Positions 15,364-31,642 of a DNA stretch of 64,000 bases are shown here, piece after piece. Source of the DNA: Thecamonas trahens ATCC 50062 (lineage: Eukaryota; Protista; Apusomonadida). Made by a program: the position numbers and the translations under genes. The notes beneath the pieces were generated by a model, which did no database searches, was not told the origin of the DNA, and was given only the letters and a program-made list of their open reading frames with translations. Position 1 is the stretch's first letter; the number at the start of each line of letters is the position of its first letter. Location: contig NW_013657640.1 in assembly GCF_000142905.1 (NCBI RefSeq), forward strand, positions 274,343-338,342, written 5' to 3'.

Positions 15364-15463
15364 NNNNNNNNNNNNNNNNNNNNNNNNNNNNNNNNNNNNN
15401 NNNNNNNNNNNNNNNNNNNNNNNNNNNNNNNNNNNNNNNNNNNNNNNNNNNNNNNNNNNNNNN
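15364..15463. other. Assembly gap (100 N)
   Basis: N run next to a poly-C tract. Confidence 1.
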
Positions 15464-22855: not shown

Positions 22856-25747
22856 TGTCACAAGGTTGAAGAGGAGGCACAGCAGCAGGAAGGAGAAGAA
22901 AGGCAGGAGGAGGAAGGCAAGGTCAAAGACAAGGTCACAGACACAGTCACGGTCAAGGTCGAGTTCAAGGTCGACGGCCAGAGCTCATGCGAGTGGCGCA
23001 AACAACTTGGACAGTCTTGCGAGCACTCGGTCTTTTTCTGTTGCTTCGTCAAGAGCCTCTGCCGCCAAAAGCAGCCGAAAGGCAGCAAAGGGCGCCAAGG
23101 AGGGCAAGGGTGGGAAGAAGGACAAGAAGAAGTCAAAGGCTTCGGCTGCTGCTGCGCCAACGGCGGCAAACACGACGATGACCACGGCGAGTGAGAGATC
23201 AAGATCTCGTTCGAGGTCAAGGTCGACAAGGCCGTCGGGACGGAGGTCGAGAGCCACACGATCCGGCAAGTCAGGCAAGTCGGGCAAGTCGGGCAAGTCG
23301 GGCAAGTCGCGCACGTCGGGCAAGTCGCGCAAGCCGCATAGGTCGGGACGGCGACGGAGGCGGTCGAGGACTGCGTTCACTGGCTCGGCGTCGGTAGCAC
23401 AGTCACCACCGCCGCGACTCGCGCCGGCTCCGCTGCCGGCTCCGCTGCCGTCAGTGTCATCGTCATCGTCTTCATCGCAGTCGCAGTCGCGGCCGCGGTC
23501 GCAGTCGCGGTCGCGGTCGCGGTCGCAGTCGCGGTCGCAGTCGAGCGGGAGCAGCTCTCACTCGGGGTCGGAAGACAGAGCAACGGCGCCAGTCCTCGAG
23601 TCGTTCTCGGATCTCCCGGAGGAGCTCATTGTCTCGCGGAAGGAGCTCAAGGGCAAAAAGGTGGTCGGCTCAGGCTCGTTCGGCAAGGTATACAAGGCGA
23701 CGTTCCGCGGCAAGCCGGTGGCGTACAAGGTGCCCAAGGGGACCAAGGAGGACCTGGCCGACCTCAAGAAGAGGTCATGCTGGTCACCTTCCTCAACCAC
23801 CGCAACATCATCTCGATCTACGGGGTGGTGCAGGACAAGTCGTCGGTCGGGGTGATCATGGAGTACTGCCCGACCGATCTCGAGGCAGCACAGGCCTCGC
23901 TTGCTCCGCTCGCCATCCTCAAGGTTGCACACGGCATCTGCTCCGGCATGGCCTACCTTCACTCGCTCAGGATCATCCACCGTGATCTCAAGTCGGCCAA
24001 CATCCTGCTCGACGTCGACGGTGACGTCCGCATCATCGATTTTGGCCTCTCGCGCCTCCTTCCCTCGCAGCCCGAGGAGATGACGCTCGGCACCGGCTCG
24101 CCGGACTTTATGGCGCCCGAGATGAAGACTGTCTCGCAGCGGATGCGCGACGCCGAGGCTGTCGAGGCCGCGGCCTCGACAGCCTCGGCCGACGAGACCG
24201 GCGAGACCCGTGGCGCGTCGGCGTCGTCGTCGTACTCACCACCGCCGCCGTCGCCGTCGCCCGACGCGCCGCCGTCGCCGCTCCCGGCATCGGCCTCGCA
24301 CTCCTCCGACGCGCACCCGTCGGAGACCGAGCTCACCCCCGTGCCCGACGAGGCGTCCTCGGGCAAAAAGTCGTGGTTCCGCCGCTGGCGCTCGAACAAG
24401 AGCGCGTCGCCAGAGTCGTCAGCGGCGTCGCCCTCGTTTGCCGCCGCCGATCTCCCGCCCAAGGCCGCCACGCCCGATGCGGTCCGGTCAACCACGTCTT
24501 TTCCTGCGCCGCGCATTGTCCGCTCGGCCACAAACTCGTCGTCGTCGCGCGGCAGCGAGTCAGACGCCGGCGGCGGCGGCACCGCCCGCCGTCGTACCCG
24601 CTCGCGCGCTCGCTCGCTGTCAAAGTCCGGTCGGCCCGGCCGTACCCGCTCGAGGTCGCGGACCTCCAAGGGCAACAGGCTCGCACCGCTGGCGGCGGCG
24701 GCGTCAGGCTCGTCGTCGTCGTCGTCACATGCTGGCAAGGCCAACCATGCGTCGCGATCCCGGAGCCGAAAGGCCAAGCAGCGGCGCCCAAGCCGGACCC
24801 ACAAAGGCAAGCGGGCACGCCGCGGCGTCGGCGGCACCGCCTCGGCTTTGTACCCGGGGCACATGCCGGCGGCGCGCCGTGGACACGGCTCGGTCTCATA
24901 CTCGCGTCCGCGGGCCTCGGTCCGCGACCTCCTCAAGCCATCGACAGGCTACGGCCTTGCGGTCGACGTCTACGCCTTTGGCAAAGTGCTGGAGGAGATG
25001 GCCGCGGCAAACCGGTCGGCGCCGCGGGCGCTGCTCAAGATTGCCGAGCGGTGCCTCAACCCCAAGCCCGAGGCACGCCCCTCGTTTGACCGTCTCGAGC
25101 CCATGCTCCTCGCCCTCATCCACAAGATCTCGCCGGCCAACTCACACCCGTCGTTAGCGTCGGCAGACTCGGGCTCGGGCTCGGGCGACGGTCCGCCGTC
25201 GCTCCGCCTTCGCCCCTCGCGCCTCCAGCCAGGCTCCCGCCGCCGCTCCATGTCGCCCTCGGCCGCCAGACGCCACGTCTCGGCCGCCCGCCGTACCCGG
25301 CAGCTCACCGCCATCTCATCGGCGTCGGAGGAGTCGACCTCGTCGCACGCTGCGGCATCGGGCACAAACTCGGGCGCAAACTCGGGCTCGGACTCAGGCT
25401 CGTCGTCGTCGACCGCCATCTCGCCGCCGCGCCCTCTCCACACCATCCGCAAGAAGCGCGCCGCGACCGCGTCGGCCACCACGCTGGCCTCGGTCTCGCG
25501 ATCAGTCTCATCGCGCCGGCCGGTCCCTTCTCGCCGCCGCTCGCGCTCACGATCCAAAGAAGCGACTCCTCCGCCAGACCACGTAGCGACGCGCACGACC
25601 CGGTCACGCTCGACCGCCCGCCGCCGCTCGCAAATCCGCAAGCGCTCGCGCTCAAAGTCCAAGAACTCGCGCTCGCCCGCCCGCTCGCTCGCCGATCTCG
25701 GCTCCGGCTCGATCACGTCCGACTCGTTTGGTTCGGCCACAGGATAA
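22722..25747 (+). CDS. Tyrosine-kinase-like (TKL) protein kinase with long Ser/Arg-rich regions; apparent frameshift near 23772
   Basis: VGSGSFGKVY...VAYK in ORF 22701..23855. HRDLKSAN, DFG, APE, DVYAFG and RPSF in ORF 23777..25747. Adding one G gives LKK-EVMLV and restores the alphaC Glu. Confidence 0.85.
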
Positions 25748-25766: not shown

Positions 25767-26636
25767 CTATGCTTTTACCTTGGGCAGGATCCGCCTCCGG
25801 GCGTTGATGAAGAAGTTGTCGAGCTGCGTCCGGCTCATTCCGGTCGCTGCGCAGAGTTCGGTCTTCTCGTCCTTGGTCGGGTACGGGTGATGAGCGTGCT
25901 CAAAGAGCCACGCCTTGAGCACAGCCTGCGCCGCCGCATACGCATCGCGATCGTCTTTGTCTCCCCGTGCCCGCTCGCCGCGCCCCAACAGCCGCTGCCG
26001 CTTGGATCGGCACTGCCCGAGCTGATCCAACTCAGCTTTGAGCGCCGCGTCGGCCGCCGAGTGCTTCCGCTTGAGCGCCTTTTGCACCGCCTGCATCCGT
26101 GCCGCCATCGACAGCAGGCCCGGGCTCGACTCACCAGTAGCCGCCATCGCCTCGGCCTCAAAGGTGCTAGTGACAGACATTACTATCCGATGCAGCTTCT
26201 CCAGTTCGGCCGCCTGCACCCGCCGCATGGCCACCAGCCGCCACATCATGTCGTCGCCAAAGGTTCCCGGGAGCAGCTCGTCGAGCTGGCGGACGCCCCG
26301 TCGGGCCAGAAAGGCCGCCACCGCTACTCCTGCCGCCAGCGGGCCCTCGCTCGGCGACTCTGTCCATGGCGCGGTCTGGATGAGCTCCATCAGCTCCACC
26401 AGCAGCTCCATCAACGGGTGACCCGCCAGCTCGCTCGCCCGTCCCGCCTCGTCGCCCAGCGCATCCGCCACCTCGGCGAGCGCTTGATCGGCCACGGGCC
26501 TGGCAGCGGCCGAGCTCGTGTCTCGTCCGGCCCTATCTCTGCTCCCACTCGACATAACCGAGGCATGGAAGCAGTGGCGGCTGTCTGTGGCAAGCTCTGG
26601 TGCGACATGGCGCGCGTGTCGCAGCGATCGCGGCAT
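25767..26636 (-). CDS. TALE homeodomain transcription factor, MEIS/PREP/KNOX (MEINOX)-like
   Basis: Homeodomain VLKAWLFEHAHHPYPTKDEKTELCAATGMSRTQLDNFFINARRRIL (PYP loop, I50). LAGHPLMELLVELME resembles MEIS-A and DDMMWRLVAMRRVQAAELEKLH resembles MEIS-B. Confidence 0.9.
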   Translation of the reverse strand: MPRSLRHARHVAPELATDSRHCFHASVMSSGSRDRAGRDTSSAAARPVADQALAEVADALGDEAGRASELAGHPLMELLVELMELIQTAPWTESPSEGPLAAGVAVAAFLARRGVRQLDELLPGTFGDDMMWRLVAMRRVQAAELEKLHRIVMSVTSTFEAEAMAATGESSPGLLSMAARMQAVQKALKRKHSAADAALKAELDQLGQCRSKRQRLLGRGERARGDKDDRDAYAAAQAVLKAWLFEHAHHPYPTKDEKTELCAATGMSRTQLDNFFINARRRILPKVKA

Positions 26637-26775
26637 GGTCGGTCTGGGCAGAGCCGAGTGGCTGCCCCCCCCCCCCCCCCTCCCCCTCCCCCGGCACCGG
26701 GCTAGGATCAATGGCTGACGGGGAGCCCAGACTCGTCTCCAACGTGTGACGCCCGCCTTCTATGCCGCGATCGCT
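26623..26775. promoter_or_regulatory. Putative bidirectional promoter (26637-26761) bounded by a 14-bp inverted repeat ATGCCGCGATCGCT that forms both start codons
   Basis: The reverse complement of 26623..26636 is identical to 26762..26775; a poly-C tract lies in the spacer. Confidence 0.6.
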
Positions 26776-27490
26776 CCGTCCAACACTTGGGTATCTGCCG
26801 CCGTCACTCGGAAGCGAGGTGTACGCCTGTGCCGGGAACGGGCCGTTTGTGGCGACGCAGACGACGCGCGCGTTCCACGCGCCGTCGACAAGCGAGGTCG
26901 AGTCCGAGCCAGAGGCACCGAGTCCAGCTAGCGGTAGCGAGTCGTCCACTGCCGAGCTGGCCTCGTTCGAGGCTGCGATGGGAAGCATGGTGTTTGCAGC
27001 CGGCAGCTTTGCGGCGCTGAGCGCGGCGGCGGAGGAGAACCACGTGGCGGGCATGATGCTGTACTCGACCCGCGGCGCGTACACCCGCGGCATCGAGGTC
27101 ATCCGCCGGCAGTGCGCCGCGGCTGGGGAAGCGCTTGTGGCGATGGAGTCGACCGCGAATGGCCCGCTTCCTGATGCCCTTGTTTCTGGGTGGCACGACA
27201 GGGTGGCTGGCATCCGGCGCGCAGCGGTGGCGCGGCTGGCGTCCGAGAGCCACGCCGCGCTGGCGCGGCTGGACGTCATGGTCGCAAACGGCACGCTCCC
27301 GCCAAACAAGAAGAAACGAACCAACTTTGACGCGCAAGCCCGCAAAGTACTTCGCGAGTGGCGAGCAGCCCACGGCGATCGGCCTGACGAGTCAGCGCGA
27401 AACGAGCTGGCGCGCGCCTCGGGCCTCAGTGCCAAGCAAGTGGCGACGTGGTTCGCCAACGCGCGGTACCGGGCGAGCGGGCATGGATAG
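26762..27490 (+). CDS. PBX/PBC-like homeodomain transcription factor with a shortened TALE loop
   Basis: Homeodomain KKKRTNFDAQARKVLREW...ESARNELARASGLSAKQVATWFANARYR. Upstream LYSTRGAYTRGIEVIRRQC...GPLP...RLASESHAALARL aligns by eye to the PBC-B domain. Confidence 0.85.
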   Translation: MPRSLRPTLGYLPPSLGSEVYACAGNGPFVATQTTRAFHAPSTSEVESEPEAPSPASGSESSTAELASFEAAMGSMVFAAGSFAALSAAAEENHVAGMMLYSTRGAYTRGIEVIRRQCAAAGEALVAMESTANGPLPDALVSGWHDRVAGIRRAAVARLASESHAALARLDVMVANGTLPPNKKKRTNFDAQARKVLREWRAAHGDRPDESARNELARASGLSAKQVATWFANARYRASGHG

Positions 27491-27499
27491 TAGAGTCGT

Positions 27500-30400
27500 T
27501 TACGGCGCAAGGACGGCGCCCGATGGCAGATCTCTGCGGACCTCGCCGGTAGCGGCGTTCTTATAGTACACAACAGCGCCGGCGCCCTTCTTGATCCATA
27601 CGTTGTCGCTGGGCACTGCCGGAGGTTGCGGGTGGTGGGAAGAGGGCGAGGGTGGGCCGTCCGACGCGGGCGGCCCGGCAAGGGCCTCACGCTTGAGCGG
27701 CGACGCCTCGCGGTCGCCCTCGAGGCGGCCGAGCTCGGCCTGCATGTCCCGGTTCGAGGACTCGAGGTGTGCGACCGAGGCGGCGACGCCGCCGTCACGG
27801 ACGGCCTTGATGGAGGCGTCGAGCCGGTCGCCGACGACCTTGAGCTGCGATTCGCCGTGGAGTGCGAGGGCCTCGGCACGCACGACCGACTGCTCGACGC
27901 CGTCGAGCTCAAGCTCGAGCGAGCGAGCGAGGACCGAGCCCTCGTTAGCCTCTTCGCGCGCGAGCCGGAGCTCGTGCTGCAGGAGCGAGATCTCGCCGAC
28001 GAGCTCGACTCGGTCGGCCTGGAGGGCGGCGACCTGGAGCTCGAGCTGAACAACTTCTTGCGAGCGGCGGTCGAGCTTGTTGTGCAAGTCCGAGACGGTC
28101 TGCGCGTGCTCGCGGAGGGTGGCCGACATGGCAGAGGTCGAGTTGCGGTCGGCATCGGCGACGGCGGCTTCAAGCTTGCGCATGGCGTCGGCAGCGGTGG
28201 CGGCCGCACCCTGAGCAGTCTCCTTGGCGGACAGGGCCTCGGCGAGAGCAGAGCGGAGACGAACAGCATCGTCATCGGCGGCGGCGGCGCGCTTGGCGGC
28301 GGCGGCAGCCGAGGCTTCGGCAGCGTCGGCGCGGGCGGTGGCGGCGGCGGCGGTCCGCTTGGCAGCCTCGAGCTGGACCACCAGCTGCATCTTGTCCTTG
28401 CCCGCGGCGAGGGCGGATGCCTGGGCGGCACGGAACTCGTCGTACGACTCCTGCAGCTTTGTGCGGAGCTCCTTGATTTGCTCGTACTGGTTGTTGATCG
28501 CGTCGGCGCCGGCGCCGGCGCGGCCGGAGCTGGCACCCGGCTGGGTGGCTAGGCCGGCCTTGGCCCGCTTGAGCTGCGAAGTTGCCTCGCGGAGGTTACG
28601 CTCAAGGGCCAGCTTCTCACGGTTGAGGCTCTCGACCGAGGCGCGAAGGGTGGCGGCCTCGTTGCGGGCCTTGTTGAGCATGCCTTCGAGCTCAAAGCGA
28701 TCGTCAGCGACGCGGGCAAGGTCGTCGCGGAGGCGGCCCATGTCGGCGGCCATGAGTTCGCGCTCGTACGAGCCGTGCGAGGTGGTCGAGGCCGAGGCCA
28801 GCGACATGCCGTTGAGCTGCGACCGGAGCGAGGAGGCGACAGACTCCAGCTCGACAATCCGGGCCTTGAGCGCGGAGACCGCCTTGCCGTGCTCTTCCTT
28901 GAGAGCGGCGGCTTCGGCGGGCGAGAGTGAGCCGGGCGGGGCCGAATCACCACGGAAGGTGCCGTCGTCGGCACCTCCGCTCGCCATCCGCCACTCGCGG
29001 AGCGACGCCGGCGGGCCGTCAAGACCGCCGGCGCCGGCCTTGCGGGCGACGGTGGCGTACTTTTGCAGCTGACGGACCTCGTCCTGCAGCGCCTCAACCT
29101 CAATCGACTTGGAGCGGATCTGGGCCCGGAGGGTGTGGACAAGGTTGACGAGGCGTGCGCGAGCGGCGTCCGACTCGTTGCCGGCCGGTTCAGACTCGCC
29201 CACCAGGACGTCGGCGAGCGCATCGGTGGCCTCTGTCACCTCGTTACGGGTGAGTGTCAGGTCCTTAGCGAGTTGGCGGATGCGGAGGCGGAGGGCCGCG
29301 TTCTCGGAGCGCAGCGCCTGGAGCGAGGCGACCGAGTCGCCGCCGACCGGCGCCTCGTCGGCAAGCTCCTCCGGGTTTTCGATGCCAGTGGCAGCCTCGA
29401 GGACACGGAGCTTGGCGGAGAGCTCGTCGACGGCGTCGTAGAGTCGGCGATTCTCCTCGCGGAGCGCGACGTTGACGACCTGGAGCTCGCCGTGGAGCGA
29501 GGCCTGCGAGATGACGCGGGCGGTCTGTGAGTCGAGGTTGGCCTGCAACTCGTCGCGCTCGGCGCGCTGGCGAGTCACATCCTTGGACAGCTCGTGGCGG
29601 AGGTAGTCGTTTTGGGTGACGAGGTTGTCGACGCGCGCAGCAAGAGCCTCGTTGGCGAGCGCGGCACGCTGCAGCTCGTCAGACGCGTCCTCGGCGGCCG
29701 AGACAGCGGCAAAGAGCCTGCCGTTCTCCTCGACCAGCCGCTCCAACTGCGGCTCGATCGATTTGGCGTGGGCAACCAAGGCGGCATTGGTCTCGGCCGC
29801 AGCACGGAGCTTGGCCTCGGACGCGGCGGTCTCCTCGAGCGAGGCCGAGAGCTCGGCAACCAGCGCCTTGGCCGACTCGAGTTCGGCTGCTGACTTGGTC
29901 GCGGCGTCCTTGAACGGTGCGAGCTCATCGAGCTGCTCGCGGAGCGAGGATGCGGCGGCTTCGGCGGTATCGGCCCGCCCGTCGGCCTTGGCCACCCGCC
30001 GCTCGAGCGCGGCGACTCGCGCCGAGAGCTCGGCATTGTCGTCGAGGGCGGCGCGGAGCGAGGCGTTGGCCGAGTCGACGGTCGACTTGGCGGCGTCGAG
30101 CGCAGCCTCGAGTGACTCGACCTTGCCGGTGAGCGCCTGCCGCTGCATCTCGGCTTGGGCCGCCGCCGACTGGGCCGCAAGCTGGGCCTCCTGGACTTGG
30201 GCCATGGCATCGAGCTTGGCCTGTTGGGCGGTGGCAGAGAGGTCAGCAATGCGTGCGCGGGCGGCGTCGGCGTCAGCGACGGCGCGGTCGGCAGACTCGC
30301 GGGCGTCGGCCAGCTGGCGCTCGAGCCGGTCGGCCCGTGCAGCGGTGACCGACGCAGCGTCGGCGGCCTCGCGGCACGACGCAAGCTGGTCGAGGACCTC

Positions 30401-31642
30401 GGCCTGCAGCTCGTCCATGGCGGCCGCCTGCTGGCGGGCACTCTCGGCCTCGGCCTCAAGAACCTCAATCCGCTGGGTGGCGGCGCTCGCCTCATTCCGG
30501 GCGGCGTCACTCTGGCCCTCGGCATCACGGAGGAGAGTCTCAAGCTCGGCGACCTGTGCGCGGAGCGCGGCGTTGGCGTCGCGCACGACGTCTACAGAGC
30601 CCGGGGTGTTGGAGGTGCTCGACCCGGACTTGGCCGCGTCCAGTTCGGTCCGCAGCTCTTCCACCTGGCTCAGCAGCTCCTCGGTAAATTCGATGAGCGC
30701 CTCACGCTCCTCGTCGGCCGACGCCGGCGCAGCACCGTCCGGGAGCGAGCTCGGTGCCAGCCGGGCCGTCGACTCGACGTCCAGCACTCTTGCCTTGAGC
30801 GCCTCGTTCTCGGCCGCGAGTTCGGCGGCCTGGACCGCGTGCAGCCCCTTTTGCTCGAGCATCGACTTGAGAACCTTAATGTACGCACGCTGCTCCTCAG
30901 CGACCTGTGCTTCACCGCGGAGATTCTCCAGCAACTCATCACGCTCGGCCTTGAGGCTGCGGATCGCGGCCGAGTCGGCGCGGGTCGCCACTGCAGTACC
31001 TGGGCGAGTCATCTTGTTCGGCTCAGCGTTCTCCGCCCCAGCCGCGAGCTTGGCCTTGAGTGTGTCGCGCTGGACAAAGAGCTTGCGAATGCGAGCGTTG
31101 GCTGCTTTGAGCTCCTTCTCTAGCCGAGCGATGCGGGCATTCGCAGCGCGATTCGACTTTGCACTCGCAGCTGCGCTCGACGCCGGCGTCCGGGCTGTTC
31201 GGGCCGACTTTCCGCCATCGGCATCATCGCCTTCTGCAAGGACCGCAACTGCAAGCGGCATCTGCTTCACATGGGCCTTTTCCACCGGAAGCGGATGGGC
31301 CGGAGCGAGCTGAGCCACTCGCTCCTCAGTCAAAGCCAGCTGGCCACGCAAGGCCGCCACGGTCTTTGTCAGCGAGAGCAAGTCACGCGCCTGTGCTTGA
31401 ACCTTTGCCGCCAGTCGGGCATCCAGGCGCCCGCCTCCAGCACCCGCACCCGCACCAGCACCCGCACCAGCACCAGCACCAGCACCAGCACCCGAGCCAG
31501 TAGCTCCCGTCGGCCCTTGCCGTGTCGTCCATGACCGGCTATGGGAGGTGGCCGACTTGACGGGAGTGGGTGCTCCTGCAGACTGCACAGGGGAAGTAGG
31601 CGCAGTTGGCTCCACAGGCACCCGTGCTCGTGGCACCTCCAT
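27500..31642 (-). CDS. Long coiled-coil protein with a C-terminal WW-like motif
   Basis: 1380-aa Ala/Glu/Leu heptad-rich ORF ending VWIKKGAGAVVYYKNAATGEVRRDLP. Confidence 0.85.
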   Translation of the reverse strand: MEVPRARVPVEPTAPTSPVQSAGAPTPVKSATSHSRSWTTRQGPTGATGSGAGAGAGAGAGAGAGAGAGGGRLDARLAAKVQAQARDLLSLTKTVAALRGQLALTEERVAQLAPAHPLPVEKAHVKQMPLAVAVLAEGDDADGGKSARTARTPASSAAASAKSNRAANARIARLEKELKAANARIRKLFVQRDTLKAKLAAGAENAEPNKMTRPGTAVATRADSAAIRSLKAERDELLENLRGEAQVAEEQRAYIKVLKSMLEQKGLHAVQAAELAAENEALKARVLDVESTARLAPSSLPDGAAPASADEEREALIEFTEELLSQVEELRTELDAAKSGSSTSNTPGSVDVVRDANAALRAQVAELETLLRDAEGQSDAARNEASAATQRIEVLEAEAESARQQAAAMDELQAEVLDQLASCREAADAASVTAARADRLERQLADARESADRAVADADAARARIADLSATAQQAKLDAMAQVQEAQLAAQSAAAQAEMQRQALTGKVESLEAALDAAKSTVDSANASLRAALDDNAELSARVAALERRVAKADGRADTAEAAASSLREQLDELAPFKDAATKSAAELESAKALVAELSASLEETAASEAKLRAAAETNAALVAHAKSIEPQLERLVEENGRLFAAVSAAEDASDELQRAALANEALAARVDNLVTQNDYLRHELSKDVTRQRAERDELQANLDSQTARVISQASLHGELQVVNVALREENRRLYDAVDELSAKLRVLEAATGIENPEELADEAPVGGDSVASLQALRSENAALRLRIRQLAKDLTLTRNEVTEATDALADVLVGESEPAGNESDAARARLVNLVHTLRAQIRSKSIEVEALQDEVRQLQKYATVARKAGAGGLDGPPASLREWRMASGGADDGTFRGDSAPPGSLSPAEAAALKEEHGKAVSALKARIVELESVASSLRSQLNGMSLASASTTSHGSYERELMAADMGRLRDDLARVADDRFELEGMLNKARNEAATLRASVESLNREKLALERNLREATSQLKRAKAGLATQPGASSGRAGAGADAINNQYEQIKELRTKLQESYDEFRAAQASALAAGKDKMQLVVQLEAAKRTAAAATARADAAEASAAAAAKRAAAADDDAVRLRSALAEALSAKETAQGAAATAADAMRKLEAAVADADRNSTSAMSATLREHAQTVSDLHNKLDRRSQEVVQLELQVAALQADRVELVGEISLLQHELRLAREEANEGSVLARSLELELDGVEQSVVRAEALALHGESQLKVVGDRLDASIKAVRDGGVAASVAHLESSNRDMQAELGRLEGDREASPLKREALAGPPASDGPPSPSSHHPQPPAVPSDNVWIKKGAGAVVYYKNAATGEVRRDLPSGAVLAP

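Follow-up and report, generated by a model that had tools for sequence, protein, structure and literature searches.

A Short Inverted Repeat at the Two Start Codons of a Divergent MEIS-like/PBX-like Homeobox Gene Pair in Thecamonas trahens

The Locus and Its Inverted Repeat

A 64-kb stretch of the 28.7-Mb assembly of Thecamonas trahens ATCC 50062 (C40:274343-338342, the whole of which is called the window here) carries two homeobox genes, a MEIS-like gene on the minus strand and a PBX-like gene on the plus strand, whose open reading frames (ORFs) lie head to head with 125 bp between them. The same 14 nt, ATGCCGCGATCGCT, open both ORFs and form an inverted repeat around the shared divergent promoter region, exactly as had been noticed in an initial annotation of the window. 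We tentatively regard this repeat as a micro-duplication that arose in the T. trahens lineage; the gene pair itself is found, again head to head, in a second lineage known from marine metagenomes. Coordinates are collected in Table 1.

The window reads GTCGCAGCGATCGCGGCAT from 26618 to 26636, the reverse complement of which is ATGCCGCGATCGCTGCGAC, and the plus gene from 26762 reads ATGCCGCGATCGCTCCGTC. The identity of the arms stops exactly at the A of each ATG and extends over 16 of 17 nt into the ORFs, and local alignment of the arms found no DNA similarity past 17 nt. The translations begin with MPRSLRH (minus) and MPRSLRP (plus) and thus have the hexapeptide MPRSLR in common, apart from which only the homeodomain is shared, so the first description of the two proteins as otherwise very different is borne out. 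Codons 2-4 (CCG CGA TCG) match between the genes down to their synonymous positions, Arg being encoded by CGA in both; the two differences between the arms that follow, CTG/CTC and CGA/CGT, are synonymous. Each arm also holds a perfect 8-bp palindrome, GCGATCGC, at +6 to +13; two of the three copies in the window are these.

Within the spacer there is an 8-nt inverted repeat with a different symmetry centre, probably due to chance, and a C tract that is off-centre and, judging by its composition, would be prone to form a G-quadruplex or an i-motif. Tracts of this sort are common in the non-coding DNA of T. trahens, with 22 C or G homopolymer tracts of 8-27 nt in the window. A 100-N assembly gap near 15364-15463 lies between such tracts.

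Table 1. Coordinates of the features discussed (window numbering unless a locus is named)
Feature	Position	Strand	Remarks
Left arm, ATGCCGCGATCGCT, opening 14 nt of the MEIS-like gene's longest ORF	26623..26636	-	ATG 26636-26634
Right arm, ATGCCGCGATCGCT, first 14 nt of the PBX-like gene	26762..26775	+	ATG 26762-26764
Entire inverted repeat	26620..26778	.	17-nt extended arms, 16/17 complementary, 125-bp spacer
MEIS-like TALE homeobox gene	25767..26636	-	289 aa if the start is 26636; PF05920 2.5e-19
PBX-like homeobox gene	26762..27490	+	242 aa; PF00046 4.9e-9
Intergenic spacer, divergent promoter region of both genes	26637..26761	.	125 bp
8-nt inverted repeat inside the spacer	26642-26649; 26725-26732		GTCTGGGC; GCCCAGAC; symmetry centre differs from that of the arms
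C16-T-C5-T-C5 tract	26665..26692	+	G-rich on the opposite strand
In-frame stop codon (TGA) 15 nt ahead of the plus ATG	26747-26749	+	sets 26762 as the earliest possible start
Alternative in-frame ATG (Met28)	26553..26555	-	start in NCBI model AMSG_08426
Loci of the relative	L007:1-5400, L008:245-2081, L009:385-3305, L010		head-to-head homeobox pair
Dispersed-repeat loci	L031-L060, e.g. L048:1005-1700		contigs C3, C6, C7, C8, C10 and others of G000

The Two Homeobox Genes and Their Start Codons

In both proteins the homeodomain recognised by Pfam is C-terminal. The minus-strand protein is 99% identical to NCBI AMSG_08426 (P0001) and carries HPLxELL and ELEK motifs in its N-terminal region in addition to a TALE homeodomain; a full HMMER search found two relatives along its full length, P0023 and P0027. 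A bona fide MEIS protein, P0141 (Meis_PKNOX_N 2e-40), aligns with residues 46-285, and the Pfam Meis_PKNOX_N match on the minus protein itself is below threshold at 13 bits. For the plus protein, the nearest solved structures to the homeodomain are PBX1 and Extradenticle (~2e-8), the loop is a TALE loop minus two residues, and no PBC domain was detected. Comparison of its N-terminal region with a protein atlas gave a basidiomycete HD1 cluster (HD1 Mating_N) at 0.78, which is below significance. We found no NCBI protein for this gene and no paper on the Thecamonas homeobox pair. The genome has ~9 homeobox loci, adjacency being seen for this pair alone, and the TALE relatives P0003 and P0004 have no neighbouring partner homeobox gene. 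After the gene's own NCBI model, the top database matches to the TALE homeodomain were unnamed proteins, P0011-P0022, with 3-10 matched stretches each; the two whose sequences were read, P0011 and P0019, contain tandem TALE-type homeodomains within one chain.

Both start codons are the first in-frame ATG of their ORFs. That of the plus gene is well supported, because an in-frame TGA precedes it and conservation with the ortholog sets in near residue 65, ahead of the next Met at residue 73. The minus ATG at 26636 is a candidate start and is less secure, since the NCBI model begins at the in-frame ATG that follows, 26555. There is reason to doubt this model too, as it splices out a 61-nt GT-AG segment (25824-25884, minus strand) within the homeodomain, and the resulting frameshift loses the recognition helix (helix 3); the unspliced ORF retains a complete TALE homeodomain, so AMSG_08426 may be a mis-annotation or an unproductive isoform. 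When translation is taken from 26636, 72 residues stand ahead of the HPL motif, the identical count to that in the ortholog P0023, and this agreement lends mild support to 26636. Coding potential, codon usage and GC content at third codon positions (GC3) were also compared for ATG 26636 and ATG 26555; in both genes GC3 was lower over the first ~40 codons than in the rest of the gene, a difference that is not significant.

Copy Number and Background Expectation

The initial annotation had suggested a genome-wide count of the 14-mer and had noted that a motif common enough in the genome might have paired by chance. This is not so for T. trahens: exactly two matches occur across the entire 28.7-Mb genome, both at the arms of this pair. 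In the window there are likewise exactly two when one mismatch is allowed (expected 0.08), a number that none of 100 shuffles reached.

A background for paired start codons came from 264 kb in total, on which all estimates rest: the window contributed 3,698 divergent ATG pairs separated by at most 300 nt, and a control region of 200 kb on contig C1 another 11,723. The number of divergent ATG pairs sharing n further bases drops ~0.27-0.29-fold per base, no other pair in the 264 kb shares more than 7 further bases, and extrapolation gives a match probability of about 0.6-1.2e-6 per divergent ATG pair for 11 further nt. What follows depends on the pairs that are counted. If any ATG trinucleotide is admitted, ~1-2 divergent pairs with at least 11 common nt are expected per genome; for genuine head-to-head start pairs the expectation is ~0.002-0.01 per genome by our estimate, the number of real pairs not being known. 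On the latter figure a match by luck is unlikely within the T. trahens genome. A survey of ~250,000 windows, at ~1e-6 per gene pair, is expected to meet one or a few such pairs by luck.

Plain inverted repeats of this length are not uncommon. Those with arms of at least 14 nt within 500 nt are expected at 0.35 per 64 kb, or a couple of hundred per genome. In the 200-kb control region the short-range inverted repeats observed and those expected from a Markov-2 model were 12 and 12.4 for arms of at least 12 nt, and 2 and 1.6 for arms of at least 14 nt.

The core of the arm was also followed through the genome. Its 11-nt core has 72 genomic copies against 25 for the reversed control, and the pattern ATGN{0,6}GCGATCGC has 235 matches against 36, many of them reading ATGGTAAGCGATCGC. 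A ~700-bp dispersed repeat containing ATGGTAAGCGATCGCGGCCGCGG, with at least 34 copies at 80-92% identity and none in the window, accounts for about half of the genomic 11-mer copies; the ORFs of one representative copy (L048) contain no Pfam domain. The core was consequently rejected as a start-proximal motif, the pattern matches being copies of this dispersed repeat. Neither CGATCG nor GCGATCGC, CGATT/AATCG or ATCGAT showed positional enrichment at 106 ORF starts in the 264 kb. A symmetric cis element at start sites, one of the explanations first put forward, therefore finds no general counterpart in this genome.

Related Loci in Metagenomes and in a Transcriptome

Word-based searches recovered near-identical sequences only, and the full HMMER search was needed for P0023 and P0027. 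Metagenomes scanned first with the minus protein and then with a two-arm DNA pattern gave no match. All searches together returned loci that are either 99.7% or 38-39% identical to those of T. trahens, and nothing between.

P0023 is encoded on four marine metagenome contigs (L007-L010) of a related species, which are mutually ~98% identical and differ mostly in intergenic sequence; among these few environmental variants, a very small sample, no allelic hypervariability of the N-terminal domains was found. The gene order is Rpn13 (+), PBX-like (-), MEIS-like (+) and coiled-coil (-), with a G/C-rich spacer of 367 nt separating the two homeobox genes. The head-to-head MEIS-like/PBX-like pair is therefore kept, with proteins 38-39% identical to those of T. 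trahens (39% for the PBX-like ortholog at L008:245-814). The coiled-coil gene has its T. trahens ortholog (51% identity) at 27500-31642; it adjoins the MEIS-like gene in the relative and the PBX-like gene in T. trahens, which means that the two-gene homeobox cassette is inverted between the lineages relative to this conserved neighbour. On the other flank stands Rpn13 in the relative and a kinase in T. trahens, whose own Rpn13 ortholog is on contig C71.

In the relative, the opening sequences of the pair are ATGGATGCCCTCAAC (MDALN) and ATGAAGGGAACGATG (MKGTM), and on L007-L010 the 5' ends of the two genes are not connected by an inverted repeat. The transcript-derived relative P0027 begins MSGTF, and the N-terminal tails of the relatives are not alignable between species. 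The comparison of orthologs suggested by the initial annotation thus shows the MPRSLR start to be missing from all three. Since the orthologous pair has unrelated starts without the repeat and the tails are unalignable, the shared start is, as far as the compared sequences tell, young and specific to the T. trahens lineage and not ancestral to the gene pair.

The near-identical loci (99.7%) are two independent metagenome contigs, L003 and L004. They agree with the reference in the right arm and in the 66 nt preceding the plus ATG, orientation included, and both break at the right edge of the C tract. The reference differs from them at five positions (27170, 27177, 27216, 27349 and 27430), all within the PBX-like coding sequence, where they amount to P137S, A139G, R152Q and two synonymous changes; ~860 nt of flanking sequence have none. 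The numbers are tiny, and they hint that the PBX-like gene may be evolving faster. L003 departs from the window after 28287, a position within the coiled-coil gene, and its final 174 nt (1593-1766) find no match there, which might reflect structural variation or a chimeric assembly.

Origin of the Repeat

We tentatively favour, with a little less than even confidence, a short inverted micro-duplication in the T. trahens lineage, of 14-17 nt across the 125-bp promoter to which we ascribe no function. The start codon of one gene, together with its first five or six codons, would have been copied in reverse complement onto the 5' end of its divergent neighbour, most plausibly by a replication template switch of the quasi-palindrome type or a similar micro-conversion. 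The C/G tract of the spacer (27 nt), being prone to G-quadruplex formation, might have promoted the switch by stalling the fork. The donor would slightly more likely be the PBX-like plus gene and the recipient the MEIS-like minus gene, because the former has no alternative start and the latter keeps an in-frame ATG 27 codons downstream. Both proteins, if translated from these ATGs, would as a result open with MPRSLR, be initiated in an identical context (+1 to +14) and undergo the same processing at the N-terminus.

Copying is preferred to convergence of the peptides because the synonymous sites of codons 2-4 agree as well and the identity breaks off sharply. The hexapeptide is itself little evidence for selection, since Leu5 is fixed by the 14-nt identity and Arg6 needs only a matching CG. 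Precedents come from yeast, where template switching between nearby inverted sequences creates or lengthens perfect arms of 7-16 bp in genes and promoters (PMC8604942); template-switch inverted repeats in yeast and short-range template switches in great apes are also treated in PMC13100816 and PMC7954356, respectively. Local gene conversion or copying, as entertained in the initial annotation, is thus the part of it that gains from the synonymous identity and from the absence of the repeat in the ortholog; the mechanism is a conjecture, and the origin by copying is held only tentatively.

Several considerations weigh against this reading. There is no close outgroup, and the orthologous locus, at 38-39% protein identity, is too distant for a nucleotide alignment showing the ancestral state, so the multi-nucleotide change is neither visible nor polarised. 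The spacer of 125 nt is long, the documented yeast events favouring short ones (PMC8604942), and the control region, with no excess of inverted repeats over the model, gives no sign that events forming them are frequent in this genome. The boundary exactly at the A of both ATGs, together with the synonymous next differences, would also fit selection on the start codon and the peptide. Finally, coincidence keeps some standing once the size of the whole survey is counted.

Pure coincidence, in which the 5' coding ends are unrelated and agree by luck over the 11 nt that follow the ATG, as one case among the very many divergent pairs examined, is unlikely in our estimate and yet far from negligible. 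It draws on the abundance of ordinary inverted repeats of at least 14 nt, on the one or two ATG-anchored pairs per genome expected by the any-ATG count and on the one or a few that a survey of ~250,000 windows should meet; the lack of conservation in the ortholog and the lack of a supporting signal from the functional tests fit it as well. It has to contend with the far lower expectation for real head-to-head start pairs in the genome, with the fact that the match falls in the sole homeobox-homeobox pair among the ~9 homeobox loci, and with its in-frame position at the first ATG of each gene, where the identity is sharply bounded.

A selected start element is harder to sustain and seems quite unlikely. 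Here the copied +1 to +14 tract would have been kept because it couples presumed heterodimer partners, possibly through an equal initiation context, through MPRSLR as a degron or processing signal, or through the palindrome GCGATCGC as an operator or RNA-RNA pairing site. The pair is a conserved MEIS-like/PBX-like head-to-head unit of families that heterodimerise (PMC6219170), the identity starts exactly at both ATGs, the synonymous next differences keep the hexapeptide, and two of the three palindromes of the window are at these sites. Against this, the element is absent from the orthologous pair and from the transcript-derived relative, the peptide evidence is weak (the Leu being fixed by the 14-nt identity and the Arg needing CG only), the motif is not enriched at other ORF starts, with half of the 11-mer copies residing in the dispersed repeat, and the minus ATG is a candidate start that the NCBI model bypasses for 26555. 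Pro stands at position 2 of both ORFs (M-P-R-S-L-R), and from the general specificity of Met-aminopeptidase one would expect Met removal to expose it on both proteins, if these are translated from the present ATGs. A six-frame search of this intron-bearing genome found no match to the GID4 (Vid24) receptor, PF09783, and no control genome matched either, which makes this a weak argument. A shared N-terminal signal, as proposed at first, accordingly receives no support as a conserved feature, the orthologs beginning MDALN and MKGTM, the transcript-derived relative beginning MSGTF, and no GID4 family being detected; a function of the shared N-terminus specific to T. trahens is possible.

In its most explicit form, the selected element would couple the two subunits of a TALE-type heterodimer, and a life-cycle switch would have its stoichiometry or co-repression decided at the start codon; this we consider improbable. 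The two mRNAs, identical from +1 to +14, would then be initiated alike, the palindrome GCGAUCGC could pair them with each other or be bound by a single dimeric factor, and a common MPRSLR tip would lead the proteins to the same N-terminal fate.

Very little speaks for a hairpin that sequesters the start codon. A transcript beginning inside the other gene would pair the arms into a stem of 14-16 bp around the 125-nt spacer and so mask the AUG, and folds of 26600-26800 on either strand do place the arms in a continuous stem, in the minimum-energy as well as the centroid structures. The overall fold is nevertheless no better than that of shuffled sequence (z = -1.8 and -1.4), overlapping 5' ends are without evidence, and the ortholog is without the repeat.

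An invertible promoter, in which the arms act as recombination sites that flip the 125-bp spacer and leave the proteins unchanged, had also been proposed in the initial annotation and is now extremely unlikely. An inverted repeat flanking a promoter has the right geometry, the off-centre C tract makes the spacer asymmetric so that a flip would alter the promoter layout, and inversion of a spacer by template switching is possible (PMC8604942). Nevertheless, no match to Phage_integrase (PF00589) or Resolvase (PF00239), the tyrosine and serine recombinase families, was found in the 28.7-Mb genome, and 14 and 12 control genomes did give matches. The reference, L003 and L004 show one orientation beside the plus ATG, a sample of three in which the two contigs end at the C tract; 14 bp is far under the homology required for general recombination, and the repeat is absent from the orthologous locus.

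The insertion between the genes of a miniature inverted-repeat transposable element (MITE) of 153 bp with 14-nt terminal inverted repeats, which the size and the geometry would fit, is virtually untenable and was rejected, the sequence being effectively single-copy: there is no family, the 14-mer is confined to these two genomic sites, the flanks are without target-site duplication, and the arms are coding.

Comparison with Known Systems

Among known systems, the repeat fits best with short inverted repeats of the template-switch type. In the reports on yeast (PMC8604942, PMC13100816) and great apes (PMC7954356), such repeats likewise have perfect arms of ~10-16 nt in one lineage, sharp tract boundaries and nearby reverse-complement copying that is able to alter coding sequence. 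They differ in that the spacer is 125 nt here and mostly a few nt in the yeast set (PMC8604942). The repeat is unusual only in landing on two start codons, and we found no case in these reports with arms sitting exactly so.

In bacterial invertible promoters such as fimS and hin, short inverted repeats flank the promoter segment. T. trahens departs from them in having no recombinase family match, a single orientation in the sequences seen and arms that are coding. By the features that define these classes, the repeat does not qualify as an invertible promoter, a MITE, a general promoter motif or a conserved N-degron.

Closer parallels exist for the gene pair. MEIS-PBX in animals and KNOX-BELL in plants and algae are TALE heterodimers (PMC6219170). 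The minus protein resembles these families in its HPLxELL...ELEK region and TALE homeodomain, and the plus homeodomain is nearest to PBX1/Extradenticle; the sub-threshold Meis_PKNOX_N, the undetected PBC domain and the shorter loop of the plus homeodomain set the pair apart, and a T. trahens heterodimer is a presumption.

The basidiomycete HD1/HD2 (bE/bW-type) mating loci contain homeodomain genes of two classes, divergently transcribed from a short shared promoter in an arrangement conserved between species; we know of no shared start sequence there. The T. trahens pair is similar in that homeodomain genes of different classes stand head to head in a conserved arrangement, and dissimilar in that the host is an apusomonad, not a fungus, and in that its few variants show no hypervariability.

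Significance of the Gene Pair and a Further Observation

If the tract was merely copied, it would be a natural example of a micro-duplication that passes a start codon and first residues to a divergent neighbour, and hence a small route for renewing N-termini and start sites. If it is selected, it would be an unusual coupling of two partner transcription factors at the translation start or in N-terminal processing. More noteworthy than the repeat is the apusomonad MEIS-like/PBX-like head-to-head cassette itself, kept in a second environmental lineage and inverted with respect to a flanking gene. Apusomonads are the sister group of animals plus fungi, and the conserved cassette is relevant to how life-cycle and mating switches based on homeodomain pairs arose.

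Elsewhere in the window, the Ser/Arg-rich insert of the kinase ORF contains a perfect 38-nt palindrome at 24152-24189, made of 19 + 19 nt with zero spacer.

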